Shown here: piece after piece, positions 12,715 through 58,500 of the stretch
How positions within the stretch are numbered: the stretch's first letter is position 1
Layout: each line of letters starts with the position of its first letter
Source: Guillardia theta CCMP2712
Lineage: Eukaryota; Protista; Cryptophyta
Length of the DNA stretch: 64,000 nucleotides
Assembly (NCBI RefSeq): GCF_000315625.1
Contig: NW_005434637.1
Location: 567,013-631,012 of the forward strand
Direction: 5' to 3'
Position numbers and translations under genes: made by a program
Notes under the pieces: generated by a model
Seen by the model: the letters and a program-made list of their open reading frames with translations, nothing else
Database searches by the model: none
What the model was told of the DNA's origin: nothing

Positions 12715-12917
12715 CTCAAGGCTACCGCGTGGTTCAGACAGACGGCAAGAAGCAGGTTTTGCAGAAGCAGGTTAATGAATCTGACGGCAGGCTGACATTT
12801 GATACGATGAACTCTCCTTGCTATGACTGATCAGGCGCCTGCCTCGCTGCATCGCACGCTTTCGACCTCGTGGCGGCATGCACGCCAATTCAATTTGTCG
12901 ATCCTCCCAAAGGTTTT

Positions 12918-13112
12918 AGTTAACCGTGCCTACCCCGGCACTGACGACCCGGCGGCCGGGCGCCGCGTACGGTATTGGCCCGGCCCGGCCCGGATCGGAC
13001 ACGGTACGGCACGGTCCGATCACGGGCCGGGCACCGTGGCACCGGTCACCCCGGGCCCGGGTCACCCCGGGCGTGGCCGCGCGGCCGCTGAGCCCGGTAC
13101 CCGGTAGTCCGA
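12918..13112. repeat. GC-rich low-complexity, palindrome-rich intergenic patch (CCGG/CCCGGG/CACGG words)
   Basis: Abrupt rise in GC; begins right after AGTTAAC; contains CCCGGGCCCGGG palindrome and GGTCACCCCGGG twice. Confidence 0.8.
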
Positions 13113-13114
13113 CT

Positions 13115-14529
13115 GACGGAATACAAGTTCGTTAGACTGAGACTCTCACTTGCCAGTACTAGTCCAAAGTCACGCCGCAGATACCACATCGACCTTAGTT
13201 GTAACAAGACAGTTTTTGCTCAAGACCGAGTTTAATGCACACAAAACCAGAATTGAGGAGCACATGAGAGATAGACTGTATGCTAGGATGTGAAACCCGG
13301 CCGCAGTAGGAAAGCCCCCTCAGGCTTCGTCCCACGTACTACAATGCCGCCTCGCAAACACGTACTAAGTCGTCTTGGTTTACAGGAGAGTTTTTGTTAA
13401 CTCGGCGCTATCTGACCGGCACGGCTGGCATACGTTCCATCCTCCCCCCGGTACGTTACATCGGACGTCAGAAAGTCACACAAACAAGAGAATGTCAGCA
13501 GAGTTCCAAGTCGAGATACAGTACGATAAGACTGTCTGCGTCAAGTTCACAGTTATGCTGAGCGGGCAATAACCATTCAAAGATTGTCCATTCTGAAGAA
13601 GATTTTCATGCAGGGCTATTAGATGTGCAGTAAAGAGATAAGGGAGATGCATACTATGATAGGCAAAGTAGCGAGCGGATGCAATGAAGAGAGATAGAGT
13701 AAAGATAAGAGTGTCTGAGAAGAGAGAAGATAAAAGAGAAGACGAGAGAAGTTTGCTCGCCAGCATTTGAAGACCAAAAGATAAATTTTTGAACCGTAAA
13801 GAACTTGTGACCAGAGATTGCTGCCGCGACATTGGAACATCCGTTTCAAGGCATTTGAAGATGTTTTGCAGTTGTACCTTGTTCGCCAATCCAGAAGTAG
13901 CTCCAGTTATGCATGCCACAGCCTAGCTCCATGACATGAAACTTCTCAAAGATCAAGAAAATATGAATCGAATAAGCTCCAAGTGTGTTTCCACAGTTCG
14001 AGCCTGTCAGATATTCGACCGACCAATCTGGCTGGGGAAGGCTTGTTTTTCCAATTCGAAGATCAATCAAACAAATTGAGGCTGAGATGACTCGGAGGCC
14101 TAAACAACTTGCGGCTAGAGAGAGAGCCTGATTGAAGAGAGGAGTCATCCGAATGTGTAAGGCTTGATAGAATTGCATGAATTTTCGGAACAGCAACGAA
14201 ACAATACCAAGAAAGAAAAAACTCCAGTAAACAATTCAACTAACCAAACATAAGATCAACATGATTGAGCATGTAATTGAGGCTCATAACCGACGGAATA
14301 CAAGTTACGGTTAGACTTGTACTAGTCCAAAGTCACGCCGCACTGAGATACCACATCGACCTTCAACTGAGTCGTAACAAGACAGTTTTTGCTCAAGACC
14401 GAGTTTAATGCACACAAAACCAGAATTGAGGAGCACATGAGAGATAGACTGTATGCTAGGATGCCAGTGTGCCCAAGTATGAGAGGACCTTAGCAAGGCC
14501 TCGCAAACACGTAAGTCGTCTTGGTTTAC
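13115..14529 (+). mobile_element. Decayed repeat element, probable retroelement fragment bounded by ~240-270 bp direct repeats
   Basis: Direct repeats 13115-13383 and 14292-14529 with a 90-bp identical core (13201-13290 = 14374-14463); purine-rich interior with stop-ridden coding-like frames; RLVLVQSHA is weakly reminiscent of an RNase H strand/His motif. Confidence 0.5.
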
Positions 14530-14544
14530 GGGCCATCATCTATA

Positions 14545-14695
14545 TCTCGGATCCGGGCGCCCCTCCCCCCGGGGCCCGGGCCGCCCGGGCCCCCGGGGGC
14601 CGGGGGCGACCGTGGCACGGCATCCGACCGTGACGACGACGTTGCTCACTCAGGCCCGCCGGTGACTGACGCCAGTCCGATCCGAGACTGAGTAG
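14545..14695. repeat. GC-rich low-complexity intergenic patch
   Basis: CCCCCCGGGGCCCGGGCCGCCCGGGCCCCCGGGGGCCGGGGG; shares ACCGTGGCAC with the 12918-13112 patch; ACTG/CAGT words at its end. Confidence 0.8.
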
Positions 14696-25566: not shown

Positions 25567-26062
25567 CTCATGAGAGCAAGGCACAGAGCAAGGCAAGCCT
25601 GAAGGTAGGCAAGGTTTCGCCGAGCATTTTTTTTAGGACTTCGAGTCAATCAGATCGATGACTAGCTACATCACAGAAGCTGCCGAAATACTCTTGGAGA
25701 CATTTTAAATTCCGATCAGAATTTTGGAACTTCCAAATGCATTAGGAACTGTTGACTTTATGTTCATATTTTTTCAGTACCTTAACGTACAACGAACTTT
25801 TTTTTCTTGATTCTTTTTTCCTCCCTTGGGTTGTTCATCAGGAGACGCGCCGCCTGCCAGCAAACGTCGAAATCCTTCAGACTACCCCTACCCCCTCTTG
25901 ATTCACCCCCACCCCTCTTTCTATACCTCAACACCCACTCTCAGATTGATTTGGACCCCTACCCCCGTGGAGGTTTTTCTCCACTCCTACCCCTTGTCGT
26001 ATCATGCTAGTCATGTCGAGGGGATCGGGAAGCAGGATGGTCGCGCCGTGATCGGAGTGAGG

Positions 26063-29000
26063 ATGAGGTTGTTGAGCGCTCAGGTATTGTGTGTACTGCT
26101 TCTCATCCTGCCGAGCGAGATCAGCACCAACGAAGAGTTGTCTCAGCCGGTTATCGGCGCTGCATTGAATTGGAAGTATGATCCATCACCTGGTAACAGA
26201 TCGGTATATTTCGATTTGCAAATTGCAATGGGTAGGTCAAGGTATTGTACGTACCAGAAAGGTAGCGCTGTCATGTGCACAGATGTGGAGGACAGCAGTG
26301 CATGTACTAGGCCAGCGTGTCAGGTTGCGAAAGTTCATGGTATCCTGTGTGTGGGGCAGGTGGTAGCCAATCGAGAAGGGTTATATTTGAAGTACTCTGC
26401 TGAAAACGGGTGCCCTTCTGATTTGGATTTGTCTGACATCTCTTCTTCTGGGCGTGTGGGTAAAGTAAATGAGTTTCAGGTAGAGAACCTATTTGACAAC
26501 CTTGAAACATGTGCGACCCCGAGCAGCAATACGTCAGGGATAGTGACAGGGCGCTTGAAGCATCAAGTCCTGATCGATGACGACACCATTGCTGTCGTTG
26601 CATGGTTATTTGACGGCAATGATCAGTTTCAGAACTCTGACATGGGGGAAGTCACAAGTCAAAACTTTGGAAGTCTGGAGTGTTTTTTGTCAACTGGCTT
26701 TCCTCTCTTTCGGATCAATGGCTCTTCATTGAATACCAGCAAAGGGTATGCATATATTCCAGTCTGTGATGGGGCAATCAAACAATCTTGGTTTCCCTCA
26801 GTTTCATTGTTTCAATTCAAGCCTTCAGGGGCCCTCAGTCAATTATTCTTTTCGTTCCGCATGAGCTGCTTTCACCCGTCGTTTGTTGATTACGGATGTG
26901 AAGGCACTTTGACAGCGTGTCCAGACTTTGTGGGTAATGTGTCAAATACGTTTCATTCAAGCAACAACTCTGAATCGCAATGCTTACTCAGCACGTGCAA
27001 TGAGAAGTTGTTGAACCAGTCGTTATTCTTTCTTCCCTTCACATTTTATACTTATACGCAATTTTCCTGTTCGAACATCTCATCTCACATCGCTCCCCAG
27101 ATTTTGACTTCAGGAGAATCGTTGGACAACTTTTTCGTATGTACAGTTGGCCAATCTTGCGAGATTCCAATTAACGTTACATGTCCCATAGACGGTTGTA
27201 TCCTGACAAGCGCTGAAAATTTTGACGCTCTCAAGCCAGATGAAGTCGTTGAAATAGATCGGCAAACAAGCGGCAATGTCATTCACGCGTTTTACATTTA
27301 CAAAATTCATAAGTTTGAAAATGTATACGATTTCAAAAACAGTGCAGCTGTTTTCTCGAACTGCTTCGTAGCCAAAAAGTTGAATTGCAGTGTTAGTCTT
27401 CCAAGCTGTCAGTCTCGTCCAGCGTGCGTGACGATACGATTGCAACCAGCAAGAAGCGTTTACAACTTTTATTTTGAGCTTCCAACTCCCACTGTATACA
27501 TTTCAACTTGTTTTCAAGAAGATGTTTTGGCGGTGGAGTTGAAATTCAACACTTCATTTCTTGATTCATACATCCTGGAAGTTTCAGGTGGGGGCTCAGA
27601 TTGCTTCTATAGAATCGATCAAGGCATGTTTTCACGATCGGCGCATTCATTATGCATGTCTTTCACATCATTGTTGGAAATTTCTGAGGTCAAAAATCCG
27701 TATCGATTTCGAATCTCGGTCAAGACTGACAAAGGGTATTTGCACGGGGGTGCTTCAAATGAAATATCTGTATTTGATTCAATTACATGTCGAGAAGCTG
27801 ACTTGCTTGCTGTAACTTGGCATAGTCAAAAGTTGAGAGTGTATGCAAGGATGCCAAATGGTAATCCTTATGAAATCTTTTCTAAAGTCACAGGATCTCC
27901 TCAGCAAGGTGCGATTGCTATGGATGAGCGACACAGCACGCTGTATTCGTTGGTACCCAGTCAGGAAAATGTGGAAGATTCAGTTTTGCTAAAGATAGAT
28001 CTACGAGGTTCCCCTTCTGTTGCAACCTCGTCACAGATTTTCAGGAATTTCTCTGTCTGGAATCTTGAATACAACGAGGCATATGATAGCTTTGTGGCTG
28101 TCAAAGTTTTTGGTTCAGAATTCACGGTATTCACTTTCAATTTTTCAAGTGCCAATGTTCAGGATTTGCTCCAATTGGAACGTCCAATTCAATTCGGCAT
28201 TTCAACTTTTTGTACGAGATACCAATTGTACTTTCTCGTGGACGCTCTTGACTCGTCCGTTGTTGAAATAGATCTTCAGAACAAGAGTAAGAAGTATCAT
28301 TCGCCATATCATTCTTCATCAAGACTAATTTCAATTTCGTTCCTTACAGAGCAAAAGATTTTATATGGAGTTTCAAGTGGCTGGCCTCATGATTTGCGCT
28401 TAAGTTTTCTAAAATTAATAGATGGGGCATGGCAGGTCGTGAATACAACATTGTTGGACTCGTCTCTTCATGATTCTGTCAATGCCATGGATCTTGAATG
28501 CTTTGCATGGTATCGGCTCAATGTTTCTCAGGGATTTGAAGTTTCTGTATTTGATATGAGCTCTTGGAAACTACTGCAATCGATCCCTTACCGAGAAGTG
28601 GTCGGAGATGTATTTTACCTATTTCCACAGAAAAATGTGAAGCCAAATATACAAGCATTGCTTCTACCTTCGATCAATACTAACCTTCAAGTTGTCACAG
28701 TTGCTGGAAAGCACTTTGGGTTCAGAGACTTGAACCCTGAGATTAAAGTTGATGATCTTCTCTGTGAAAGAACCAGTTGGTACCGAGATGACATGCTTGT
28801 GTGCGTACTCCCACATTTTTTTCAAAGAAACAAGGCAAACCAATATGAGTTCAAGGTCGAAATCCAGGACAAAATTTCTTCACCTCAGGCAACCGCTTTA
28901 TACCTGGAGTACTGGATTGGAATTGTCCCTTCATCATCACCAGTTTTTGTTGGCTCGAGTTACTTCACCATTTCCGGGTTTGGTTTTCGTGAGCCCTTCA

Positions 29001-32000
29001 GCGATTACAAGTGTGCGTTTTCCACGATACAATATACCGCTGTTTCCTCAGAGCTTGTTGAAGGACAGAAGAACAAACTTGTCTTCAGGTTACCTTACTG
29101 GTCATCAGCAGCGCGCACAACAGATGTATATTTGCTGCGAAGTAACAAACATGATTTGAACAATTATGCCACAAGTTTGATTCAGTCGAACTCAACGATC
29201 TCATTTCATATGACTGAGACATGGAAAGGGATTGTGCCTTCAGCCGACTTTTTGCCTGCCTATGGAGAAGTGTTCTTCACTGTGTTGGGGGATGGTTTTG
29301 ACTTGGATGAGAATTATTCTTGTACTTTAAATTTTCAATTCAATTCGTTTTCGACGATTGCAATTGCCGCAAACCATACAGCAGTATTCTGTAACTTCTC
29401 ATACCGTCTCCTGGACTCTGGTATTGCGAACGTTTCTTTGCTAAGAAACGAACAGGTAGTACTATTTTGGCAAGCCGGTGATCATTTATTGAAGGAACAT
29501 TCAATTCCTGTATTGTTCAAGGAGGTCTGGATTAATTTCAGTCCCTTATCTGTAGTCGGAGTGGCGAATCATGAATTCATTGTGGATGGGTCCGGTTTTC
29601 GGGACAGTTACGCTTGTGTATTTCATTCATTAAATAGAGGTGATGAATTGCGGTGCAATGCTACTGTGAATGACTTCGGCAGATCATTGTCATGCTGTGC
29701 TGCTCAACAATTAAGTTTGAATACCAGTGGACAATATTCTGTAACGATCGTATCCTTGTCAAAAGATTCTCCTGTCAACAAGTACGGATCAGAGGCGAAG
29801 CTTGAATTCTATGAGAAGGTGGAGAGCATCCTACCTGTAGACATAGAAATCAGCGGCATGAAATCGTTCGATGTTCGTGGATTTTGCTTTCAGCCAGGAA
29901 AGAATTATGAAATCTCACTCCTAGTCCAGAAGTACGACTTTAACAACGCTACTGTCTACGAAAGTTCATATTCAAGTCAGAGTTTTTCGTTTATTAGTCC
30001 AAGACAGTTGTTGTTTTATGTGGACACAAGCCTCTTTGTTTCTTGTATTGCAAACGTATCATTCTTTGCAAATGTTGAAAGTCATCGTAGTGCTCTCATT
30101 GCCAACCCTGGCCTCATGATCCACTTCAAAGAAAGAGTGATTTCGCTTTCTTTGGTTGAAGTATATGCAGCAGAAATTACTAAGATCCTGTTTAAAACTT
30201 CAGGATTCAACTCGGCACAGTCATATTCTTGCAAATTCTCACGGAATACAACCTCGAACGAGCTTGGTAACGAGGTTTTATTCCAATTCCCAGCAACCGT
30301 TTTGAACGCATCGTATGTGGAATGTTTGGTTAATATTTCCATTGCAGGCAAGGTTCTCGCTCAGATAGCAAGAACAGACAACACAATTATTGACTCAGGG
30401 GTTGAATTAAATGTGTTGGAATATTGGGACAAGTTGTATCCTGTCTATGCATCGACTGGGGGTGCAATAATCACGATTTTCGGCGAAGGATTTGATCATG
30501 CTTCAAGGACTTATCGATGCAGTTTCACACAAGAGAACGTGATTTACAATGCCACTGCTGATCCTGGTTCTGGATCAACCACTTTGGTATGTACTTTGCC
30601 GAGTTCGTTTCTCGCTGGATCCGTCACAGTTACTGTTAGTTCACAAGATCCTAGGGATCGCATTTACCCAATTCAGCTAAGGAGCGGGGGTCAAGGACGA
30701 ATCATTAAGCTTATTGAAGAGATCAATCAAATATTGCCTACCCAATTTTCTGCCCGTGGTGGTACGAATCTGACCGTTGTAGGTTACGGTTTTGTGCAAA
30801 CTGAAAAGTATTTCTTCAATTTCAGGAACATTCGAGTGACAAACGATTGCATTAGACATAACCAGAGCTATCTTGTTTGTCAGACTCTTCAATTCAATCA
30901 CAGTTCCAATACAGATATTCTATATCTTATGAACTATGAGGTTGGATATAATGTGACGCTTCATTCAGTCAAGATTTTTTCAGAAATTGAATCCATAATC
31001 CCTTCAAGTGCTTCAGCATATCATGGAGCAATCTTGACGTTGACTGGATATGGATTTGATCCAATCAGAACATACATAGTTAGGGTTGCAGGATCATCAG
31101 CTGTACAAAAAAATATGTCCTTTTCCGCGACTGCAAGGAATCAAAATGAGATTTTTTCGAACTTTGCGATCTGGACATTTGAGTCAGGAATGACTTCCAT
31201 TGAAGTTTTAGAAAATAATGATTCTGTCTCACTTGCATCAAGTCTTCAAAAATTTCTCATCTTCCCTGAAATCATCAGTATTCAGCCGAACCGATATGCT
31301 GCCGGATTACAGCAAGAGTTAACTGTCTACGGAGCAGGATTTGATCCTACTAGGAATGACTCCACTTATAGATGTCTAACTACGGCAGGCACTGCATCCA
31401 ATCTCGTTCCAGCCGCTTCATACACCAAGCTTCTTTGTAATCTTTCTGCGTGGACTTTCGAAGCCCGCTCTACCTCCTTCTATTTGTTAGACTCTTTTTC
31501 ACAACTAAACGTGACAGGAGTTCTGGATATCAACTTCACAGAATCCGTGTCTGGTCTCCAACCCAATGAATCTTACTCTCAGAATGGAATCTATATTACA
31601 ATATTTGGTGCAGGATTCAACAGGGGTTCGAAATACAACTTAGAATTTTATCGCCTCTACACCGATGAGAAGTTGGAGGTTACAAATATGACAAAGATTG
31701 AGGAGAAATATATCGTGTTTTTCATTTCTTCCCCTTGGAAATTCGCTGGTGGCGATGTCAATGTTACTCTGAAGAATTCTGGATTTCATGTTCAGAATTT
31801 ACAACGATTCCGTTTCAATTCTGTCATAAATTTTCTTGAACCAACAACTGGTTACTTTTTTGGATCCGTCGTACAAATTGCAGGTTTCGGATTCTTACTC
31901 AATCAAAAAACTTATACATTTCGCGTTACGGCTGGAGCAAATTCTTCTTGGAGTATTCAGTCTGAATCAGTAGAAGCTTCTTCGCCTCAAGTAATCGCTT

Positions 32001-35000
32001 TCCAAATACCAGAATGGAAGTGGGCTCTGGATGGAAATGGAACCTTCACTTTCTCTGTATTTGAAAGTTTCAGAAAAGTTCTTGTTGCTGACTTCTCAGA
32101 TCATTTTGAGATCAAGGTGGGATGGATAGGCATCACTCATCAATCGAGGCTGTCTTTCAATGGAGGAGATAGTATCACTGTGTTTGGAGGTGGATTCAGT
32201 TCACGAGTTGATTTCTTTTGCAGATTCACACCAAGTGATAGCCAGGTATCGAATATATACAAAGAAGAACCGGCATTTGTTATGGATTTGAGGAGATTAT
32301 CATGTCAGACGCCGTCATGGATCTTTGCAAGCAGCTTTGCGACATTTTCCCTTTGGTACTCTGTTGCTGGTCAAAAACGAGAAGTGAATCAACTATTATA
32401 TCCCGTTGGCTCTACAAAAGTATTCTTCGAAGGGTATCCTGCACTGCTTGGTGGCACCTTGAATGGTCCCATACGAGGACAGCAGAAGGTTACTCTTGAT
32501 GGAAATAATTTTGGGATGGTAGACCTGACGCCAAAAGTCCGACTTGGAGACACAGCATGTGAGTTCACGACATGGCTGTCGTCTACACAGATGGTCTGTG
32601 GTGTACCATCGAAGCATGGGGTTGCAGTGACCGCAGATGTTATAATATCTATCGGACCATATCGGGTAGGAAGCAGAAGTCATGCTTTTACCTTCGATGG
32701 CCCTTCTTTGAGCGAAATATCTGTGACGAGAGTAAACGCGACAAACAAGCTCTCGGAATGGTTCACAATTTGGGGCATGAACTTTCTACTATACGACAGC
32801 AGCCCGGCAGCCAGAACAGGGGGGACAGCCTGTGAAACAACAATTTGGTTTTCAACTAGTTCTATGAACGCCAAAAATGCAGCTGGGAATCAAGACTATG
32901 TTCCCGTTCATATGACCGTTGATTATTCAAGCTCAGTATCGACCCTATCACTTGCGTTTTCTTTCGACCATCCGGAAATTTCTTCTGCAGGTTTTTTGGC
33001 AAATGCTGCACAAGCTGGATCAATCTCGCTCTCAATCTGGGGATCTGATTTTGGTCTTGCTCAGATGTCCATGTCTGCGAGAAATGGTGGAACGAATTCG
33101 GAAAGCACAAGGTGGCGTTCTTTCACCTCAGTTACGATACGTGCGGTACGATCCGGGCTGACTACCAAAAGTGCACAAATATCGCTGGGTGCAACTAGGT
33201 TCTCAACCTCTACAGAACTATTCACAAGTGATGGATTGATTTTATCAAGTACAAAGGCGAAGAACAGCGCATACGGCCAATCTGTTAAACTCTTTCTACA
33301 AGGTTTCAGTCTTTGTCCGTTCGAATCGAGTGGCAAGTCATCGATTGGATCATCAATGGCCAGGGCCACTATGTGGCTGTCCACAACCTCTCTTCAAGCA
33401 CATACTATTGCAGGAATTGCTCACACCAAGAAAGTTCAAGTCAGTGTTTCAAGAACTTTATATTCACTTTCTGAGGCTTACAGCTTTTCCTCGCCTACCA
33501 TGTCTCTTGTTTATTCCAAGATTGATGCTGGAGCTTGGACTGAAATTCCAGTATCCTGGAATTTTGTGGGGCAAGACTTTCAAGTACTTTATCGTATGAA
33601 CCAAATCATAAAAAGAACATTGTCAACAGGTAATGCTTTTCAACATACCGATTTGCATTCTGACTTAATTTGTCGAACAGATGACGATGTTTTTTCGGTT
33701 GACTGGTTGATCCACGACAACGCATTAGCAACAGTAAATGCTCCATCAAATTGGAATTTTGAAGACATTCAATCAGTCTCAGATCTGCAAAAAGTTCCAT
33801 TTTCTCAGGATATAGTGCAGGGCTCTATCATCACGCAGAGAAGTCAAATCTATGGATCTTACGACAAGCAGGAGGTTGAAGGGACAACTCTAGAATTTGT
33901 TTCCTCGCGCTCATATGCAAGCACGCGATCTACATGGCAGGACTTCACTTTGGAAGTCGTTTTAGTTAATCTCGATGAAAATTGGATTGGAGTCACGTTT
34001 CGTTATGTAGATGACAAAAATTATTATCGTTGGGAGATGAATGCACAAAATAACATCTTGCGTTTGAAAAAACGTAAAGAAGGAATTCTTTCTGTCCTGT
34101 ACGAAAACTCTCAGACAAAGATATATGATAGCAATATTGTTTATCGGATATCAATCAGAGTAATTGAGAACACAGTGGAAGTGTACATGGATGAATTTTC
34201 CAAAGCTCCTCCATTTCCAACTCTTGGGACTTTACTGGTACAAAGAGAAGATCCTGACCTGGGACTATCCAGGAAGGGAACCATTGGAGTTTGGAGTGCA
34301 GGGAGCCTTTTGTCCTGCTTCTTGAGTGTAGGGGTCTATCGTCCATTGCAAGTTGCACGAATGAGTAACCTGATTGTAAATGGTGGAGGTGAAATGACTC
34401 TGCATGGAAATAACTTTGGTCATTTTGCCTCACTCAGACATCGTATTCGACATACCGCGGGTGAAACAAGTCGATGGATATCTGACAGTAGTATTTGGTG
34501 TAGGAACCAGCCTGGACAATTTGCAACCAACAGATTATCGATCTCCCTGATGACCGTTGGTACCATTTCAGAAATGCTTTCGTATAATCATCCTGCTTTG
34601 AGTTGCAGCATCAGGTCGAATACTGCAAGTACTGGATCCCAGAGATTGACTGTTTTTGGCAATAATATGGCCGAAAAGTTTTTCAGTCAACAAATCAGGC
34701 GGGCAGGAACAGCCTCAGAGGCTACTCGATGGTTTACAACTTTTGAAATACCTTGTAAGGGGTGTTTTGCTGAGAAATGGGCCTCAGATACGTCAATTCA
34801 TGGGTATACCAGCGGTGGTATTGGGTCAAGTCAACGATTGATGGTATCAGTTGGGATAATATCTGGTACCATCAGCGATGTGTGCTCCTTTGACGTACCA
34901 ACTTTGAGTGGTTCGAAACGAATGAATGCAATTTCAACTGGCTCTTCAATGGTAACCATAGTTGGACAGCATTTTGCAAACAATGCCAATACAGCAACAG

Positions 35001-36999
35001 CAAGAATAGCAATGAATGGAGGAGGAACATCTTCAGAAGCGACGACATGGATCTCTCAATCTAGTGTAGCAACACGACTGAGTCACATGCACGGCAGGAC
35101 AAGTCTGGCGATTGTTACCCTCAACCAAAAAATTGGCTCAAATACACAAACAATCAGTACCGACACTCAGCACATCAGCACTATATCCAAAAACAACCCT
35201 TCAACAGGCACAACAATGTTGACAATCAAGGGAGCAGGGCTCGGGCTCGGAGGGCCGACGGGAGGGGCGCGGGGGGCCAGGACGGCGTGCGAGGCGACGG
35301 AGTGGGAGTCGGACACGTCGGCGCGGTGTCTGACGGGGTGGGGCTGGGGAGGGACGGGGAGCGGGCGGGCGACGGTGACGGTAGCAGGGAGGGCAGGGAG
35401 CGCGACGGAGGCGTACTCGACCGACGCGGCAAGGGCAAGCTCGCTTGTACGGGCGAACGCGGGGGCGACGGGGTCGTCGAGCGTGACGATAGCCGGGGCA
35501 GGGCTCGGGCTCGGAGGGCCGACGGGAGGGGCGCGGGGGGCCGGGACGGCGTGCGATATGAAGGATCGTTGTGGCTGTCAGAAACAAGTCTTGTCTGTCA
35601 TGTTTTCTCAGGGTTAGGTGGCTCGGGTTCTGTTGTTGTTACTACATCGTTGTTGCTTTCTTCGCTGTCTTCCTCGTTTTCGTTTGATAGCCCTGATGGT
35701 CTCATGGTTGTTTCAGCAAACGTTGGTTCGGCGTATGGAAACAGTCTGTATATAGATGGGTCGTTCAGCACGTATGATTTGACCTTGTCATCAAGAATTT
35801 TGTTTACGAGTAGCGAATCAACCCAATGGCTTTCAGAAACAAGTCTTGTAAGCTTACCACCTGCTGGGACAGGTGGGCAACAATCGTTGATTGTAACAGC
35901 TGGTCTGTTGGTATCATCCAGAAGCCAACTCGTCTCTTATGATCAATACAAGATTCTGAAAATTTCATCGGAAAGTTGCCTGGATATCACTTCGACGAAC
36001 ATCTCCTCTGATTCGATCCAAATTGAATATTCGAGCGCTATTCTAACTGTGTCAGGAATCAATTTTGGTAAACAAGACATCACCTCAACCTATCAGATTG
36101 GTCAATCAAGTTGTGCAAGTGTGCAGTGGACCTCAGACACCTCAATTGTTTGCACAACCACGGAGAATGTTACGTCATGGTGGTGCAATGATTGTGTGGC
36201 TGGGAAGTACACGGAGTACATAGACTCTCAGAGTTCCGCATTCAATTGCGTAGATTGCCCGGCACTTTCAACCTCAGCGCTGCGATCAACCTACTGCTGC
36301 GTTTATTGTCAGAATGGCACATGTGACCAGTTGAGTCTGGCGGAAGCATATTCCCTGCCTAACGCCTCGTGCGTACCCACAACTCCCACAAACCACATTC
36401 GAGGGGGAGTGCCATTCGCGTCTAGCTCCTCAGCAGCAGGATGCTCGTTCAGTGGGCAAGACATCGGTGGGCAGTACGAAGGCGCATTGTGCTATTCGAA
36501 CATCAATGACGGGGTCTATGGCAGCGGAAGCCAATGGAAATCGAATGCTGATGACAATGCATCGTTTGTGGGGGTTGTGTTCAATTCAACTCAGAGAGTG
36601 AAGTATGTTTCCATCGTGGCGTCGTTAACATCCGATTACAACTGCACACTAGGTGCAGTGTGGCAACTACAGTATCTTCCTCTGAATTACTCCAACGCTA
36701 AACCTGAATATGGGTCTGCATACTGGTTCAATGTTGGAAATTTCAGCCTGACAACGTGGGGAAGGAACATATTTGAGATAAATGGAACAATCCTTGCAAA
36801 TGCAATTCGGCTATATTCAACGGCACCTGCCAGCAGTTGCTTAGATGAACTAGAAACGTTCAGCGATGGCGACACCATTCCGAGCGTGAATACGACATGC
36901 CAGGAAGTTCTTGATACCAGCTACGGATCAGAGGGGACGTGCGAAGCAGTATGTGCAGGCACTCGCGTTTACAACTCTTCTTCTTCCACTTGTGTGTAG
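26063..36999 (+). CDS. Giant secreted IPT/TIG-repeat protein with beta-propeller-like region, ConA/DUF1080-like lectin domain and C-terminal discoidin-like domain; frameshift at ~35556
   Basis: Signal peptide MRLLSAQVLCVLLLILPSEIST; many TIG repeats (P..G..ITI.G.GF..Y.C.F, later G.NFG..R.G.TACE.T.W.S.T...C); lectin-like segment WQDFTLEV..WIGVTFRYVDDKNYY..GTIGVWS (~33930-34330); repeats continue in a different frame (ORF 35287-36999: EGSLWLSETSLVC...); no C-terminal TM seen. Confidence 0.85.
35231..35556 (+). repeat. G-rich coding cassette with internal ~62-bp direct repeat spaced by one TIG unit (264 bp)
   Basis: GCAGGGCTCGGGCTCGGAGGGCCGACGGGAGGGGCGCGGGGGGCC(A/G)GGACGGCGTGCGA at ~35234 and ~35498; composition sharply different from the AT-richer flanking exon. 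Confidence 0.9.
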
Positions 37000-49500: not shown

Positions 49501-52500
49501 AAAGATTTCCAAAGAAAACTTAACAGCTTGATCTGCTGCATAAGTGAAGATCTGTTTACTATTTTGAATCAACAGTTGTTCAGACAAAATGACCGAAGGA
49601 CTGAAAACGATAACTTGATGATTAACCTGATCTTCAGTAGCGATCCCTGCTCTGACATTTCCAAAGACATCTGTGCTGAAAATTTCAAAAGAGCCTGCAA
49701 CTCCAACAGGTGCCCCGTTTAGCCCAGGTCCACCTGCAAATGCTGACGTCGGCAAACCCGGGACTACAGTGATCTGACTGCTATCTCCGACTTGTAACCC
49801 GGATGTTGTTACTCGAATGGTATATGCTGCAGCTCTTGTCAAATAGTACAGCGCAGAAAAGATTCCGTTTGAAATTATTGGAGTAGCAGTTACCGTCTGC
49901 ACTTGATTTGAATCCGAGAGCATTGTGAGGAGAGAGGCAGAGAACGTATCGGTGTTGATTGTTCCGACTTGATTTCCGTATGCGTCTCTTGCAGTAACAG
50001 AAAAGCTTCCTTGAATGCCTGCTGTGGCAATTGAGTTAGATACGACTAGCGTACACGCAGAGGCTGCAATCAGCCCATATTGCACTATGAAAGTTTTGGG
50101 CTGTGTCGGTACAGAGTTCACAGAGATTGTCAATTGGTAGTTTCCAGAAATGGTAGGCGAAAGAGTACTCTGATATGTTCCTGAGCCTGCTGGATTCAAA
50201 GTCAGGGAGATCGACCCTTGATTTCCTGTATCAGCAGCTGTGTAGCTGATCAAAGCAGTTACTTGAGCAAGGTTTGGTACTAGATTGAAATATGAATCTC
50301 GAACATAGATCTGGAGATTAGTCGATTCTCCCGCCATGATTGATTTGAATAAATCCAAGGCCTGTCCTCCCACAGTAATGAGTGTGTTTGTTGCATTTAA
50401 AATCGCAGCATTCGTGATCAACTGCTGAGGGACAAAATTGATAGGGACTCGGTTCACAGAGACCGAGATACTGTATAATCCAGCCTTTGTAATGACATAC
50501 CTGCAAGGCACAATGTCAGGCCATCAAAGTTTGCAAAATAGAAATCAATCATTACCCCAGCATTCGTGCACAAGCTTTGGGGCACAAATTAGATGTTATA
50601 TCGGTAGAACATGGAATCGTTGTACGGCTACAATAACCCTTCGATGCGTTCACCCACGGAGTGATTGCAGTATCGTTGGAGTCTCTTGCCAAATCTGGGC
50701 TGAATAATACGACGAATACATCTGTTCCGTCCACCACATTGTTGTTGAACTCATCCCTAGTGAGGATCCAGAACGAGCTGAAGACCCCTGCAGTACTTAC
50801 AGACAGTGATGAACCACGAAGTTCCGATCTTGACGCACAGGTGATCCCACCAGTCACTCTCAACGAGTATGGACTTCCCAATATGTGAATGCCACTTCTC
50901 CTGATGGAGACCTTGTAATAGTCCTGCGAGCAAAAATCAGGTGGAGTGTTGAGGCAAAGGGCGAACTTCGTACCGCACTAACAGTGGTCCTATAGGTAAC
51001 GACATATTGCCCATTGTACTGTGGAGAAACAGCAGAAGAAGATGGATTATTCAAGTCTTCCACCTTGATTAAAATGTCAGTGCTAAAGAGCAACAATTCA
51101 AATCACAACAATCGTACATTTGCGAAAAGAAACGGTGGTCCGCCGATGAGAACATTGAAGAAAAGGCCTCCAGTTGTCAAACTGAAAGTTGGCAAGTGAG
51201 TGATATAATCAAGAAGACGAGATGAAAAATACTTGTTGCCGAAAGAGTCCTTGGACTGCACTGTAAATGTAGATGTCAAACCTGCCCTCCCATTGGTCAA
51301 AGAAGTCCCATAAGCAACCGATAGAGTGGCATCGGGCAAGCTTGGGTTGACTAAAACAGCAAATGGAGAACCTTGACTGTGGATGAAAGTAGAGTTCTGC
51401 AGACTACCGACATCCATCAAATAATTCCCAGATCTGGTCAAGAGCCATTGCGTTCGCCAACCATCATCAACGCGAGTTGGTGCAAATGTGATCGAATTGT
51501 TTGCCTGCAACATGAGTTGTAATCTTGTAACCAATGTCAAGTCCTGAATTTGCCTCGTAGGGTTTCCAAACGAATCTCTTGCTAATGTACTGAATGTTGC
51601 CGTTTCTCCAGCTACAGAGCCTGTAATTCCTGGACCATTGCTTGTGCACATACGAAAATCTACCGAACCTGGAACTACCTCAATGACATTGGGTAATCCG
51701 ATTTTTACGCCTCCAAGAGTGACAGACAATCTATAGTTTGCAGCAAAGGTTGCTTGGAAGAAGACAAAATACTGCAATTCATCCACAACGTTTGTCGTTG
51801 CTAACTGTACAGCGCCCGAAGCAAATTTGCATGTGGGTACATTTCCAGAAGCACATAGAGTATCGTTTACATATAGCAAAAAGGGGTCACTTTCTCGACC
51901 TGCTCCCCCATAGACTTGAATATTGCCTGATACGTCTCGAGCATATACTCTGAAGTCCTGCAATATCCCGGTAATAATGCTCTTTCTATTCCAGTCAACA
52001 GTGGTCCTTGACGTAACTGTGGCCCCAGGCAAGATACGAAGGTTGAATGGACTGTTGCTGATATGGGCAGTAGTTGTTCTTGATACAACTTCGACCCATA
52101 CGACAAATATTCCAGCGGTTGACAATCGCGGGACAAACGAAAATGTTCCATCGTTGTTGTCGATCACTGGAATGCTGGACGAAGAAACCCTAACATTGAT
52201 TTTGACTCCTTGTATCTGAACATCTTCTCCCAAGAGCGGCAATCCTGAGCTATCCCTGCAGAACATGAATCAGCACACACGATGATACAATCGCACACTT
52301 GTAGATACCTGGTTTGGACCACGATTGGATCTACAGAATCAGCACTTCGAAACATGTATGAGCTGCCGACCATTGTCGATTCTAGAGGAGAAACTGGTCC
52401 GACGTTGCTGATGCATTCCACTCTAAAAGGACTCTTGAGAATTCCTCGCCCATCAGGGGTACAGGTATCCGGTGTTACACATACCTCGGTTAGGATGACG

Positions 52501-55500
52501 GATAATTGATAAAACCCCAGACTTGAAAGCACGTAGCTGAAAGTGTAAATTCCATTTCCTTCGAATGTTGCATCTGTCTTTTGTCCCTGATTGATGTACC
52601 ATGTGAATCTTGACAAGTCGCTGGTGATGACATTTCCGTATTTATCAGACTGAACGATTGAAATTGTTGATGTCTGGGTCTTGGCCGTGCTGCTTAGCCC
52701 TGTTCCTTCAGCATAGCAACTAGGAGCATAAACAGCATCGGGTAACATCCGAATTGCAAATGGTGAACCGGAGATAGGAACTGAGGCTGCATTGATTATC
52801 ACGTTCACTTTAAGCGACCAATCTCCACTCCTCGTGATGGTGGACATTACTTTCCAAGCCTTGTCAGCAACTTGATAAGTTGGAGAGTACGTAATTACTG
52901 TTTGCTCCTCCCCAATAAATGCTTGTTTCTTACTCATCGACAGGTCCAAGACCGAATTTTCTGCTGCAAGATTACCAAATCTGTCACGAATGAATATCAA
53001 CATATTCTGTATAGTCCCTGCTGTAGACAGCGACAATGGTAACGTGGATCCTGATAGCGCATCAGAGGTTCGAACAGTGCATTTCGACAAATCTACAACA
53101 GAAGAAGTCACAGAAAACTCTGCGGGGCTCCCGCGAATGTTGATTCCAGATAGTTGTATCATGACGTTGTACCGTCCTGTTTGGGTCAAGAGAGCTTGCG
53201 CAGTGAAAGTTCCATTAAGATTATTCAACATGCATCCTTTTGCAGAATAGCACGGAATTTCTATATTCAGAGAATTCACCACTTTGATTGAAAACCTGAT
53301 AGTGGTGGAAGAGAAGGGATCGTACTCACCAAGGTTACCGTATAGGTCTCTGGTCTGAATGAAAAAATTTTGCACAGATCCAGCAGTAGCTATAGTCAAT
53401 GCCTGGTAAGTACATCCTTGCGCTACTATAGGACCTGGGCTGACCTTAATAGTTCTCGGTGAACCTGGAAGATTGAGAAGTTGTGGTCCATATATCACTC
53501 TCAAAGTGTACGAGCCAGCAATCATTAATACGAAAGTACATTCGTATGTGCTCGTTCCAAATGCACAGGTTCTATTCATCATCATCGAGCCGACAGTATC
53601 GTATTGGGCTACAACGAAACTTTCAGTTTTCTCCCAACCCTTCGAAAAAGCAAACAAATCTGGCTTATTAGAACCACTGCCATCTCTTGCTTGAATTGAG
53701 AAAGTTGTAGTAACACCAGCAACAAAGAAAAATGGTATTGCAGGCTGTACAACACAGAGATTGGGATCTGTCGCTGCAGGAATCACATACATTTGTAAGA
53801 TTCCATTCAATGCATCTTGTCCCCAATACAGCTGAAGGTTGTATTGCCCCTTATCGGCAGGCTTCCATGAGATGATGTATGTGCCATTGACGTAGTCCTG
53901 AAAGCTAAAAGTGATTAGAACCGTTGACGGGCTTGACACAACACTTGCACTGAACACGAGACCTCCATCTGTCAGATTGTTAGAAAATCTGTCTCTGGTT
54001 ACAATGATAATATTGCTCCGATCACCAAGTTGTACGATATTGAAGTCTGAGAATGTGATGCTGAACAAAGTTTTTGTGATATCAATAGCACTTGGAAGAA
54101 CTGAAAATGCAAGTGGCGAGCCAACTATATTGAGTCCTCCCAAGGTGGAATTTATCACGTAGTTGCCTGACACCGTCAATATAATTCCCACTTCATACGT
54201 AAACCGCGCAAGGGCATTCTGTTGTGCGACCAGCAGTAGATTTGGATTGCAAGGTTCTACAGAACAAACCCTTTTGATGTTCAACCGTACAAGATAAGGC
54301 AGAGTCGAAATGTAATTATTTCCAAAGACATCTCTCAAGTCAACTGCAAAGGTTGATGAGACTCCAGCCGTCATCGAAGTAGATTTGGAATACAATCGCG
54401 ATGTGCTTGAAGAAGGTTGATTAGAAAACACAGTAACGTTGTACGGACTTCTGCCTACCCTACTGCTATCAGACAATAATATGTTCAACAAATAAGCACC
54501 AGACCGCGTGACGACGTAACTTGCTACATGCATGAAGTTTGTGTATACTATGCTCACAGGGACAATCGATGGGCCAGTCAGTTGTGACACGATAACATGA
54601 GGTGTCTGGTCAGGCTGATACCTGATAGCATTTCCGAAAGCATCAAATGATTGTACATTGAATGTTGAGAGTACTCCTGCTGTTATTGTCAGCAAACCAT
54701 CACCGGATACAATACTTGTCGGTCCACTGGGTACAGCTGGAACGATGGTCAAATTGTAGGGGCTCTTGTCGATAGGAAGAATCTCGTTCAAGAAAACACG
54801 AATCACGTAATTTCCAACGATATATCTCACCACACTTGCATTGTACTTCCCATTTTGCAAATCTGTCATGCGAATCTTTGGACCAGAGTCAACCGAGTAG
54901 GAGACATTATCTCCTCCACTTCGTTTGTTGATGCCTCGAAAGTCTCTGATCTGTACAGAGAAAGAAAACAAGATTCCTGCCGTCCCCCTGGTTGCAAGGT
55001 TGGCGTCTGAGTTGAATCCAGTGACCTTGGAGCGACCTGCATCTGCAGGACCAGCTTCATCAACAATGATTAAAGTAAACGGACTTCCAGCAACGTTTTT
55101 GCCACTCAGTTTCACGTTAGCTGTGAGATTTGCTTTCTCATTCGGAGCCGTGAACTCAACGATGTATAGCCCGCCTATAGTTGGAAATGGTGTAACAGTA
55201 GTCACAAATACTGTTTGCAACGAAGGATTAACGATGGATATGTCCCATGTGTCAGTGCTTTGAGTCCGATCGTTTCCATATAAATCTCGAGCTTGAATAG
55301 AGAAAGAAACTACATCCGTAATGACTCCACCATAATTATCGAAAATAAGTGTCTGAGAAGGGTCTGTGAAGCCCGGGCTGAGACTCAAAACTGATATTGG
55401 AGATATCAGCTGAGATTTGTAGAAGACAGATACAGAAAACAAGCCACTTTTTGTTACTATAAGCGTTGTTGTGTTATCAGGAAATAGTTTCATCGTGAGC

Positions 55501-58500
55501 TGTTGAAAACTATCTACAGACCTTATGACGTAGAGGTCAAAAATGATTTGAGTCGAGGTTGATATTAGATTTCCGTAACGGTCCCGAGCGATCACAGTGA
55601 CCGACCTTGTCGTGCCAACTACACCAACACTGAATCCAGCAGAAAAGGATATGGATGAAACAGTTGTATTCACATCATTTGGCACCACTACGGCTTGAAA
55701 CGGGCTTCCAGAAATATGTATATCGTTCAGCAGAATTGACAGGCTATATCTGCCTGCAGCTGTCGCAGTGTACGATACTCCAAGTCTTCCATCCAAGGAG
55801 TCAGATGTTGCTGTCGAGCCAAAGCTCTGACCAACGAATGAGGAAGTGAATCTGATGTTAGACGATAGTCCAACAGTGCGCACATTTCCAAAAACATCCC
55901 TGGTGAGCACATTCACAATTCCGACTGTGCCGGCCCGCAAGGACTTCGCGAATAGATATGTTTCATTCAGATAGATCAATGTGCTCATATTCGCATCTGG
56001 AAGACCAGGGATGACATCAGCAATTGGTATGTTTGTCCCCAATGCGATCGATACGCCGTTTGCTGTTCGAATACTCAGCGACGATCGGATCTGCTTTCCA
56101 GCTGTCAGAGGCAGCCGGACTGGAATGCCGATCTCCACAAGTTGGCCCGTTGGTGTTTGCGAACAATTGCCCGACCGACTGAGAATGACTACCTGGCTAG
56201 TAATGTAATCAGAACAACACTGTACGAAATGAGAGTTTTCGAGTCTAGAAGATAGCACAGATTGCACTTGACCAGTCGATTCATTTCTAGCAACGATGAA
56301 GAATTCTGCTTGATTGTCGGTAATGTTGGACGCTGTGCCCGTCCAAATATAATCCCCGCTCGAATATCCACATGAAGAGACGAAGGAAGGAGGAAGGGAC
56401 GATAATTCTTCGCTGGAGCAAAGTCTGGTTCCAAAACTCTCACAGAATTGCAATGCTTCTGAAAAATTCCTCTGCCCCGAACACAAAACTCCGGACCTGT
56501 TCTCACACATTCCATGCAAGTTGGGACGACATAAAGCAGACTCAGTGCAAGATAGATCGTTGATCGTCTGCCATTTGAGAAGATTACAATCAGTAAATTG
56601 TCTTGGCGTGAATGTTTGTAGGAGAATATTGCCATCTAGTCCCATCACTTGCGTAACTTTGTACGGCTGTTGAACATTGAATGATGCAGCCACTGAATAT
56701 GAAAATTCTATACTCGCGTCGCCAGGAATTTGAGTCGTACTCAAGAATCGCACATGCAGTATAGTCTGTGCACCAGTCGCGACTAAATCAGAGAAAATGG
56801 AGACGTCAGTTATAAGTGGGATCGAAAAATTCATCGCATTTGGAAGAAAACTACTTAGTCTGCCTTCCAAAGCAACTTGAACTGGATACTTGGGAATAAA
56901 GTGTTGGAGAAATTCACCAGGCTGCACGATAGCCACGATTGATGTGTCTGCAATCCAAGAGACATCAAAGCAGTAAGTCTCGCCAATGGTTGCTTTCACT
57001 GTTGTAGGTGGATATATTCCAAAGTTCCTTCCCGTTATCGTCACTTGACCAGTAAACTTCGGGTAGGTCTGTCCAGCCAAGGCAGGTAGAACTGTAGGGG
57101 TAATATTCAAAGCCTCTGGAGCATCGTAGGTGAAATGCGATGAAAATTCATTGCAATTGGATACGTTCTGATATTGGATGAAGAATAAATCAATACCTTG
57201 TCCCAGGCCAGGATGAGTCAAACATGTCACTGACGAATCTGATGTCCATTCAAATCTTTCACAGGATGATCCTGCATACTTCAGCGCAACATTCTGGCTG
57301 TAATCAACAGTTCCGAAGTTGCTCCCAGAGATCGTGACGAGTTGTTTTCCTCCAGGCGGTCCATTTGTCAACTTTGTCGAGCTAATGCAAGGAGTGGAAA
57401 AATTGAATAAAGCTTGTGCAGTGCTTTGAAGCTGTATTATCGTTACAAGCGATGAAAGTTGAATACCCTGCCCCGCTCCTAGTTTGCAGGAGACTTGGGT
57501 ATCAGAATTCCACAAGGATGCTTGGCAAGATGTACCCCCACTCCGTATTGCAACTGAAAACGAAGACCGACCAAGAGAAGCTCCATACATGGAAAGAATG
57601 TCTCCTCCGACAGCGACAACAAAGTGAGAACATTTGGACTCATTTGTGACATTCAGCAAAGATTTGCAGGAAGGTTTGAAATAAACCAAGTTGAGCTCTG
57701 GGGGCTGATACGAAAAACTTTTGGATTGTGTTGAGATTTGATTCATGATAGTGGTTACAACATCGCTCGAATCAGGAATCCCATGTGGTATGACGCAAAA
57801 TATTGAGCTATCTGATTTCCATGAAGTCCCCTCTGACGCGGTGTAACCAAAACTATTCTTCAAACTCGAATCAAAATATCCCAAATTCCTGCCAGTAACA
57901 GTGAGATTGCTACGCCAGGAATAAGATTGATGTAAAGTTTGATCGAAAGAGAATTGATTTACACTGGTTTCAACTCTTATTCCCGAGGTTATTGATGCAG
58001 CAAGGTACTTGCCAAGTCCTTGTACTGCTCGCAAAGACATTGACGAGTCTGATAACCATTCAGTTGCGGTGGCCGAGCTTCGTCCAAGGCGAGAAGAACT
58101 AGAATAAGAACTTCCAAGACCGAAAGATACTCCTTGAGCTTGAATTATTACTGTGTGAGCATCTGTTGGAAGGTTTGAACGGTTCACTAGCATTAGCTTC
58201 CCTGCTTCATACCCATAGCCATTGGTTAGAGTTCCAACTTGATTCATGGATGTTAGAACTATCTGCTTGGATCCTCCAGAGCCGGTGCTTGTTGAAAGTG
58301 TCATTGATGAATCGGAATACCATTGAGTCCTTTCGCAAGAGGTACCTCCCCCTCTACCTACAGCACTCAATGCCCGCATCCCAATAGAAGACCCAAAGAC
58401 GTCTTGCTTCCTGGGCTTTGCTGTGCTAAGCCATGTATCACTTGCAAGCGGGGGATTGATAAGATCATCGTTGCAACTAGCAGCAAACAGCCTTTGGAAC

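Follow-up and report, generated by a model that had tools for sequence, protein, structure and literature searches.

Mutational signatures point to underlying repair enzymes. Snap-back SD-MMEJ and polymerase-theta insertions (PMC2943611, PMC5728401, PMC4912351) are short reverse-complement copies of the sequence adjacent to a break; the last junction shows microhomology, and back-and-forth copying is possible. At V(D)J coding joints, P nucleotides add a few bases that form a palindrome with the flank, as do the excision footprints of hAT/Transib-type elements, which come from a hairpin on the flanking DNA, and in fungi RIP makes repeat copies decay unusually fast through one dominant type of change. 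The insertions described here share these features. They were found in a window of 64,000 nucleotides from the cryptophyte Guillardia theta CCMP2712 (contig NW_005434637.1, positions 567,013 to 631,012), where two diverged direct repeats had led to the original prediction that a process inserts ACTG-type oligomers into repeated DNA. Very probably, the locus is an old TRIM/LARD copy whose LTRs have diverged mainly by insertions of the form X-C-rc(X), a process that has acted in at least two repeat families. No description of this insertion grammar was found in the literature searched.

An old non-coding LTR retrotransposon

The two direct repeats are real, lying 1.17 kb apart with a (near-)identical core of ca. 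88 to 97 nt, and they are the end-repeats (LTRs) of a single old non-coding LTR retrotransposon copy of ca. 1.5 kb (Table 1). Family boundaries and the polarity of the indels were taken from LTR alignments of 39 and 105 copies (the window LTRs against 103 others). The family is abundant in the 87-Mb genome, with at least 228 LTR copies counted by a conserved 23-mer of the repeat and more than 334 candidate matches genome-wide. At the window locus and at least 20 others, direct terminal repeats of 328 bp, ca. 1.2 kb apart, bound an internal region, which in the window element matches 20 other full copies end to end. Perfect 5-bp target-site duplications are present in 13 of 14 full copies, and the termini are exactly TG...CA in 10 of the 14, the remaining four differing at one terminal base. 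No gag/pol coding capacity was detected in the element, whose ORFs reach at most 147 aa, are unlike between copies and have no Pfam match. We classify it as a non-autonomous LTR retrotransposon of the TRIM/LARD kind, extending from ca. 13114 to 14624 and lying against a GC-rich island.

Immediately beyond the LTR, across the family, stands CTCCCCCC, the complement of which, by inspection, is a polypurine run rich in G that adjoins the LTR on the minus strand. The position of this run suggests that the minus strand may be the element's reading direction. The segment beside LTR copy 2 contains CTCATAA, which may correspond to the anticodon loop of tRNA-Met (initiator). A search for a tRNA primer-binding site with a 13-mer returned one non-tRNA site, where ARAGORN found no gene, and a spaced pattern returned nothing. 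Neither was an autonomous partner of the family found among the LTR-motif pairs 3.9 and 5.6 kb apart, as in one of the two another transposon interrupts a family member, and the other consists of two LTR fragments with host genes between them, encoding a kinase and a solute symporter.

Table 1. Features of the element and of its surroundings, in window coordinates; indels already listed in the original prediction are marked †
Feature	Position	Strand	Basis or remark
GC-rich island left of the element	12920-13108	.	77% G+C
Left copy of probable 5-bp target-site duplication, CCGAC	13109-13113	.	Directly before the element's TG
LTR copy 1, full length, TGACGG...CCATC	13114-13441	.	39- and 105-copy alignments
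12-nt derived insertion in copy 1, GAGACTCTCACT †	13139-13150	+	Other family copies read TTAGACTTGTAC here
CCAG insertion in copy 1, TG-C-CA-G-TA †	13153-13156	+	Not in family; fits centre-C rule
9-nt filler in place of ca. 36 bp in copy 1 (deletion-insertion)	13299-13307	+	Family alignment
4-nt insertion in copy 1, AGGC (equally CAGG), giving CCT-C-AGG	13321-13325	+	Fits rule, 3-nt arms
3-nt insertion in copy 1, TA-C-TA (originally read as ACT) †	13363-13367	+	Fits rule
Internal region, non-coding	13442-14291	.	Polypurine-complement run 13442-13451 abuts LTR copy 1
CTCG private insertion in internal region, GA-C-TC-G-GA	14091-14094	+	Comparison with full copies; rule test
LTR copy 2, inner ca. 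two-thirds	14292-14532	.	Alignment to copy 1 and family
Small 2-3-nt change in copy 2, AAGTT-ACG-GTTAG; AC-G-GT	14307-14309	+	Alignment; exact event ambiguous
ACTG insertion in copy 2, CT-G-AG with an additional A †	14342-14345	+	Not in rest of family; fits rule
CAACTG added in copy 2 by inverted copying of AGTTG, which follows it and now reads AGTCG, with a G †	14364-14369	+	Family alignment; fits rule
CCAG insertion in copy 2, TG-C-CA-G-TG †	14464-14467	+	A small deletion-insertion comes next, as far as 14479
Junction of ca. 45-bp deletion in LTR copy 2	14497-14498	.	Family alignment
80-bp GC-rich filler in place of ca. 33 bp of LTR copy 2	14533-14612	.	LTR homology ends at 14532 and restarts at 14613
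Outer-end remnant of LTR copy 2, TGGCACGGC...ATC	14613-14624	.	Family LTR-end match with internal deletion; short, tentative
Right copy of probable target-site duplication, CCGAC	14624-14628	.	Same 5-mer as at 13109-13113; tentative because the LTR end is damaged

The two LTRs of the window element differ by three clean substitutions and ten indel differences. Two of the substitutions are of the CpG/TpG type and located at the element edges, and the third (AGTTG/AGTCG) is, by family polarity, a T-to-C change in copy 2. CpG decay was rejected as an account of the divergence, since none of the three substitutions relates to the indels, and so was recombination between LTRs of different subfamilies, which would need many substitutions too, while only three are present. 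The marked indels of Table 1 are all present as originally described. Each of these micro-insertions occurs in no more than 3 of the 105 copies, in practice only in the window element, and they are derived, the longer allele not being the ancestral one. The 105-copy alignment shows no tandem duplications among those listed, in line with the earlier observation that most do not simply duplicate adjacent bases. The ca. 45 bp that had been considered unalignable do align with the family, copy 1 having suffered a ca. 36-bp deletion with a 9-nt filler and copy 2 a different deletion of ca. 45 bp. A 14.8-kb contig from an independent run matched positions 12900-13205 without any difference, and 38-nt raw reads over 13083-13143, 14303-14363 and 14486-14546 gave single-copy depth and zero indel calls. 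The insertion CCAG at 14464-14467 has an identical counterpart that arose independently at the same site of a second element (contig C71). Both LTRs, presumably identical when the element integrated, appear to have gained their insertions independently and after integration; this timing rests on the correlation with divergence described below and on the logic of LTR pairs, because no de novo event was observed.

Form and frequency of the insertions

At a site ...X|R..., the insertion yields ...X-C-rc(X)-R..., and the other strand shows the mirror form rc(X)-G-X, where X stands for the 1 to 6 bases (mostly 2-3) just before the site and rc(X) for their reverse complement. We scored private insertions of 3-9 nt in two unrelated repeat families against a null of shuffled inserted bases, which does not capture every alignment artefact, although all equivalent gap placements were examined. 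Pooled, 72 of 111 fit the rule, with 14.1 +/- 3.1 expected, and a control in which the flank is reversed but not complemented gave 6 against 6.4 expected. The LTR alignment contributed 46 of 72 (8.1 +/- 2.4 expected), with 3-nt arms in 14 cases against 1.1 expected, the internal region 10 of 19 (1.9 expected) and the unrelated family 2 12 of 16 (3.8 expected). One 890-bp segment of family 2 behaved differently, with none of four insertions fitting and all four being tandem duplications, which are a minority of the scored insertions. Between LTR pairs the rule is followed by 8 of 10 clean differences of 4-5 nt, and in the window element by all 7 clean events. Within the 12-nt insertion of copy 1, the palindrome TGAGA-C-TCTCA spans 13138-13148, and, decomposed by hand, the whole insertion may be read as two successive fold-back events.

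The identity of the centre base matters. In the LTRs, C predominates, A and T are at chance and G is in weaker excess (12 against 5.5), and spacer-less palindromes with the flank are not enriched (14 observed, 17.8 expected). Among longer events, 14 of 55 take a zig-zag form, X-C-rc(X)-N-X, in which X is copied again (0.6 expected). The scored events keep both flanks and most are pure insertions without flank loss; the simple ones have no flank duplication, 2-3 nt being repeated in the zig-zag subclass only. Microhomology of at least 2 nt into the far flank was found at the return junction of 7 of 26 pure events (p = 8e-4). Site preferences are weak, with no clear target motif. Footprints of the Tc1/mariner type (TA...CAG/CTG...TA), fill-in duplications by Top2 or Spo11 and the loss of a target duplication were rejected, as the direct duplications or TA sites that they predict are absent.

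Private scars per copy increase with private substitutions (Spearman 0.51, p = 2.5e-8), with a density of ca. 1 per 3-5 private substitutions across three alignments. Private insertions number 132 against ca. 48 deletions, and LTR pairs hold 83 substitutions versus 32 indels. The GC-rich regions around the element are also enriched in odd palindromes centred on C or G. The left island contains 20 with arms of at least 3, against 5.0 +/- 2.3 in base shuffles, and the filler of LTR copy 2 together with the right-hand island contains 10, against 2.9 +/- 1.7, whereas the same count in a control ORF gave 9 against 12.2.

Possible mechanism and rival explanations

The scars most likely stem from erroneous reverse copying where the DNA is nicked or broken. 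A 3' end at the nick or break would gain one C and would then copy back a few bases of the strand that it has just left. This step could be a snap-back stabilised by a protein, a switch of template, or a hairpin with C at its tip that is opened off-centre. Sometimes the end might reverse a second time, giving the zig-zag form, before being re-joined, often at a microhomology of 2-3 nt. It should be noted that folding back over a turn of a single base is unfavourable on steric grounds if no protein holds it, and the authors of the SD-MMEJ model agree for snap-back of adjacent bases (PMC2943611). The genome has five family-A polymerase loci and one Ku-domain match, which are silent on polymerase theta dependence. 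We regard as possible, if rather doubtful, that a lineage-specific enzyme adds these C-centred copy-in-reverse insertions, biases the genome toward insertion and, where it acts repeatedly, makes intergenic GC-rich palindromic islands grow; a specialised end-processing polymerase, a terminal transferase, a hairpin-forming nuclease or a domesticated transposase could be candidates.

The scars might also be excision footprints of a cut-and-paste transposon with C...G ends and without target duplication. Its terminal C would be left on the flank, and the flank would be sealed as a hairpin, opened 2-5 nt off the tip and joined, giving X-C-rc(X). This route accounts for the constant C, the intact flanks and the 2-3-nt arms, and one member of the LTR family holds a 2,662-bp insertion with 14-nt TIRs, 5'-C...G-3' ends and no target-site duplication (one copy inspected). 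At least 20 near-identical full-length copies of this 2.66-kb TIR family indicate that it was recently active. However, a symmetric two-hairpin model predicts a G on the far side, and among the 20 single-base cases a G follows C plus the arm just six times. The density of the scars would demand very high excision rates, their sites lack a clear target motif, and no transposase was found, the inspected 2.66-kb copy having no long ORF. Excision seems unlikely to be the source of the scars.

Much less probable is an origin in reverse-transcription errors (template jumps) at copy formation, rather than in genomic mutation. Reverse transcriptases can add untemplated bases and snap back, and errors in plus-strand strong-stop DNA, a step of the established retroviral replication scheme, can make LTRs differ at birth. 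Yet the grammar recurs in the unrelated family 2, in whose copies long inverted repeats occur. The palindromes are likewise present in the GC islands beyond the element's borders, and the scars accumulate with private substitutions.

The original prediction, in which an enzyme supplies repeated DNA with ACTG/CAGT-type oligomers and so acts as a frameshifting counterpart of RIP, was right about a process that adds short non-duplicative oligomers, which is real, frequent and stereotyped, but almost certainly not about the word that it adds. None of the results points to a targeting of repeats or to a RIP-like defence. Recurrence of the motif does hold in the window element, where five events create ACTG or CAGT. 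The first case originally listed, an ACTG placed between CCG and ACGG, is not an indel at all, being the point where the target-site copy CCGAC joins the first bases of the element, TGACGG. In the other copies of the family the class is unremarkable, with 14 of 109 private insertions (rank 8 of 136 classes; mean 6.2, sd 4.4 creations per class), and words containing CG rank higher. The sequence is set by the flank, consisting of a C plus the reverse complement of the 2-5 bases beside it, as in the pooled test, and the flank-dependent rule predicts each ACTG/CAGT insertion of the window element. The word is seen because the flanks read AG or TG (CT-G-AG, CA-G-TG, CAACT-G-AGTTG), which makes the ACTG motif a by-product of a simpler rule. 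Finally, although assemblies are error-prone in repeats and some insertions are tandem duplications, an artefact of assembly or of sequencing, or replication slippage of the ordinary kind, is hardly credible, as the independent contigs and raw reads match the assembly at the private insertions wherever reads can resolve them, and slippage gives direct repeats, not C-centred reverse-complement copies.

Significance and comparison with known systems

The copy-in-reverse signature, one base plus an inverted copy of the flank, is so uniform and frequent that it indicates a biochemical step which is specific, tractable and outside the standard picture of end joining. If it were general in this alga, the usual deletion bias would be reversed, GC-rich palindromic islands would have a mechanism of origin, dating of LTR elements by substitutions only would mislead, and genome-editing junctions in cryptophytes would become predictable. 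Should a lineage-specific enzyme be responsible, this would be a previously undescribed mutational signature shaping genome architecture.

As for the element itself, its family resembles TRIM/LARD elements in being non-coding and present in many copies, with direct LTRs, TG...CA termini, target duplications of 5 bp and solo LTRs, although with a length of ca. 1.5 kb and LTRs of 328 bp it is about as large as TRIMs get. RIP acts on duplicated DNA through C-to-T transitions, whereas here the clean substitutions between the two LTRs are few and insertions prevail. Arms of 2-4 nt are what a hairpin opened off-centre typically leaves. However, P nucleotides are spacer-less palindromes, a class that is not enriched here, and the 8-bp target duplication that hAT footprints retain in two copies is missing. 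Besides, the centre base is a constant C and not the complement of the neighbouring base. In comparison with SD-MMEJ, the inverted copy adjoins its template with a single base between them, mainly C, and there is no evident pre-existing inverted primer repeat with a loop. SD-MMEJ usually comes with a deletion, while most of the events described here are pure insertions with intact flanks, and they form a class that is both unusually common among the private 3-9-nt insertions and unusually uniform.

A non-coding LTR retrotransposon family

The two direct repeats of the original prediction are real and represent the LTRs of a single old element. When LTR copy 1 was searched against the 87-Mb, 669-contig eukaryotic genome (the window being C37:567013-631012), more than 334 candidates were recovered, many of them paired ca. 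1.2 kb apart, and a conserved 23-mer from the repeat occurs 228 times. Alignments of 39, then 105, copies gave a repeat length of 328 bp. A perfect 5-bp duplication lies on either side of 13 of the 14 full elements, and 10 have exact TG...CA termini, the other four differing at one terminal base. The internal ca. 870 bp is homologous between copies, with only short ORFs that show no conservation between copies and no Pfam domains. Given the paired 328-bp repeats, the 5-bp duplications, the TG...CA ends and the lack of conserved coding capacity, the family belongs among the non-autonomous LTR retrotransposons (TRIM/LARD type). A polypurine run adjoining one LTR suggests that the element would read on the minus strand of the window. 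No tRNA-type primer site could be confirmed in the element, and two LTR-motif pairs spaced 3.9 and 5.6 kb apart yielded no autonomous partner.

In the family alignment, the two LTRs of the window element differ by three clean substitutions and 10 indels; 20 other LTR pairs gave 83 substitutions versus 32 indels, mostly 4-5-nt insertions. The segment described as unalignable was resolved into two distinct deletions. Copy 1 lost ca. 36 bp and has a 9-nt filler there, whereas copy 2 lost a different ca. 45 bp and also bears a small deletion-insertion. With the family as outgroup, the micro-insertions originally listed proved derived and private to the window element, except for "ccg[ACTG]acgg," which is the target-site copy joined to the first bases of the element and not an indel.

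Features of the element in the window, including insertions (scars)
Feature	Position	Description
Left end, undamaged	13109-13113	probable target-site copy CCGAC, then TG
LTR copy 1	13114-13441	from family alignment
LTR copy 2, main part	14292-14532	
GC-rich filler, 80 bp	14533-14612	breaks into LTR copy 2
Short putative LTR remnant	14613-14624	followed by second CCGAC
12-nt insertion	13139-13150	includes TGAGA-C-TCTCA (13138-13148)
CCAG	13153-13156	TG-C-CA-G
CAGG	13321-13324	CCT-C-AGG
3-nt insertion	13363-13367	TA-C-TA
CTCG	14091-14094	GA-C-TC-G-GA
ACTG	14342-14345	CT-G-AG
CAACTG	14364-14369	CAACT-G-AGTTG
CCAG	14464-14467	TG-C-CA-G-TG

Several other arrangements were noticed. At L016:1246-1855, one LTR copy contains a second, solo LTR of the family. 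On contigs C172 and C22 (loci L028 and L013), the 3' flank of the element, past the 5-bp target duplication, repeats ca. 14 bases of the 5' flank located ca. 17 bases upstream (20 nt of flank examined), as if the elements had landed within a 21-23-bp tandem repeat or induced a longer duplication. Elsewhere in the window there are two uninterrupted ORFs of >3,200 codons (25826-35617, plus strand; 52164-62123, minus strand), and their neighboring ORFs encode EGF/DSL, TIG, filamin and discoidin domains.

A palindromic rule for private insertions

Private indels across the family comprise 132 insertions versus ca. 48 deletions, with insertion lengths flat over 1-5 nt. Inspection of the insertions revealed palindromes spanning the junctions, significant against two null models. 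The rule has the form X-C-rc(X), where X is the flank and rc(X) its reverse complement. The insertion starts with C and continues with the reverse complement of the immediately preceding bases; seen from the other strand, it has a terminal G, and the bases before this G are the reverse complement of those immediately following the insertion. All seven clean insertions in the window element obey this rule, and the 12-nt insertion can be read, by hand decomposition, as two successive events. Scoring took in all equivalent gap placements, with expectations obtained by shuffling.

Private insertions fitting the rule, and controls
Data set	Observed	Expected
LTRs, 3-9 nt, window copy left out	46/72	8.1 +/- 2.4
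LTRs, 3-nt arms	14	1.1
Element internal region	10/19	1.9
Family 2, all segments	12/16	3.8
Pooled	72/111	14.1 +/- 3.1
Center A (LTRs, arms >=2)	4	3.0
Center T (LTRs, arms >=2)	5	3.1
Center G (LTRs, arms >=2), weaker excess	12	5.5
No spacer (LTRs, arms >=2)	14	17.8
Flank reversed, not complemented (pooled)	6	6.4

Family 2, a very abundant repeat unrelated to the LTR element, occurs beside some loci. In its segments A and B, 12 of 12 insertions fit the rule; segment C supplies the four that do not, each of them a tandem duplication. Its copies (L099-L128, e.g., L105, L114, L128 and L120) are also dotted with 50-370-bp insertions that have one constant end (including GGATTTACTGGCAGAAGG), a variable one and 4-7-bp target duplications, the pattern of 5'-truncated non-LTR retroelement copies.

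Among the 72 rule-obeying events, 26 are exactly C plus an arm of 2-5 nt, and in seven of these pure events the inverted copy extends at least 2 nt into the far flank (p = 8e-4), a sign that the return uses microhomology. Of 55 insertions 5-12 nt long, 14 show the full zig-zag X-C-rc(X)-(0 or 1 nt)-X (0.6 expected). No strong site motif was seen for the scars. Some sites do recur, with identical CCAG at ATG^TG in the window element and another on contig C71. There is also a hot spot in the LTR stretch corresponding to window 13286-13298 (GGATGTGAAACCC); within these 13 bases, insertions occurred independently at least eight times among different copies, including identical CCAG in two elements.

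ACTG/CAGT had been proposed as a special inserted word. In family copies other than that of the window, it was created 14 times among 109 private insertions, ranking eighth of 136 word classes (mean 6.2, SD 4.4), the top being CG-containing words. ACTG is therefore not special, and, since all seven clean window insertions fit the rule, ACTG/CAGT is simply its output beside AG and TG flanks.

The window element sits between GC-rich islands, and island-like filler overwrote part of LTR copy 2. C/G-centered odd palindromes number 20 versus 5.0 in base shuffles for the left island and 10 versus 2.9 for the filler plus the right-hand island (3.5-4x), with no excess in a neighboring ORF (9 versus 12.2). 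The excess would agree with island building by repeated firing of the scar process, but it is only suggestive, as the shuffle keeps base composition only. CCGGG-rich islands hold or adjoin several family copies (on C109 and C76, and at window 12920-13108), which could reflect insertion preference or island growth beside elements.

Origin of the scars

We infer copy-back at a C-tipped 3' end as the most likely source of the scars. A 3' end would gain one C, copy back the strand from which it had come, sometimes turn round again, and be rejoined at microhomology. A competing explanation is that scars are transposon excision footprints, for a flank hairpin keeping the terminal C would yield identical ones. 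A 2,662-bp element, with 14-nt terminal inverted repeats and 5'-C...G-3' ends, splits one family member (L135:914-3575; G000:C17:38213-40874); the one copy inspected has neither target-site duplication nor long ORF, and at least 20 full-length copies of 96-99% identity point to recent activity. However, the partner G expected from excision is not enriched, and a very high rate would be required. Reverse-transcription errors are unlikely: the more private substitutions a copy has, the more scars it tends to carry (Spearman 0.51, p = 2.5e-8), and scars therefore build up in place, not at the birth of the copy, the rule also holds in the unrelated family 2, and C/G-centered palindromes are enriched in the GC-rich stretches around the element too. 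Artefacts are improbable as well, with reads and assembly agreeing where checked: a 14.8-kb contig of an independent run matches window 12900-13205 exactly, and over the private stretches 13083-13143, 14303-14363 and 14486-14546 raw 38-nt reads show single-copy depth and no indel calls (shared parts reach hundreds-fold depth, contributed by other copies).

A full-text literature search found no description of this scar grammar. The lack of enrichment of palindromes without a spacer excludes classical P nucleotides. Among described processes, the scars come closest to the snap-back synthesis of alternative end joining, in which snap-back at adjacent bases is, according to its authors, unfavorable unless stabilized by protein (PMC2943611). 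The scars differ from it in their one-base turn, marked C preference, absence of flank loss and uniformity. We class the scar process as a form of templated fold-back insertion, and there is a fair chance that a distinct enzyme activity underlies it.
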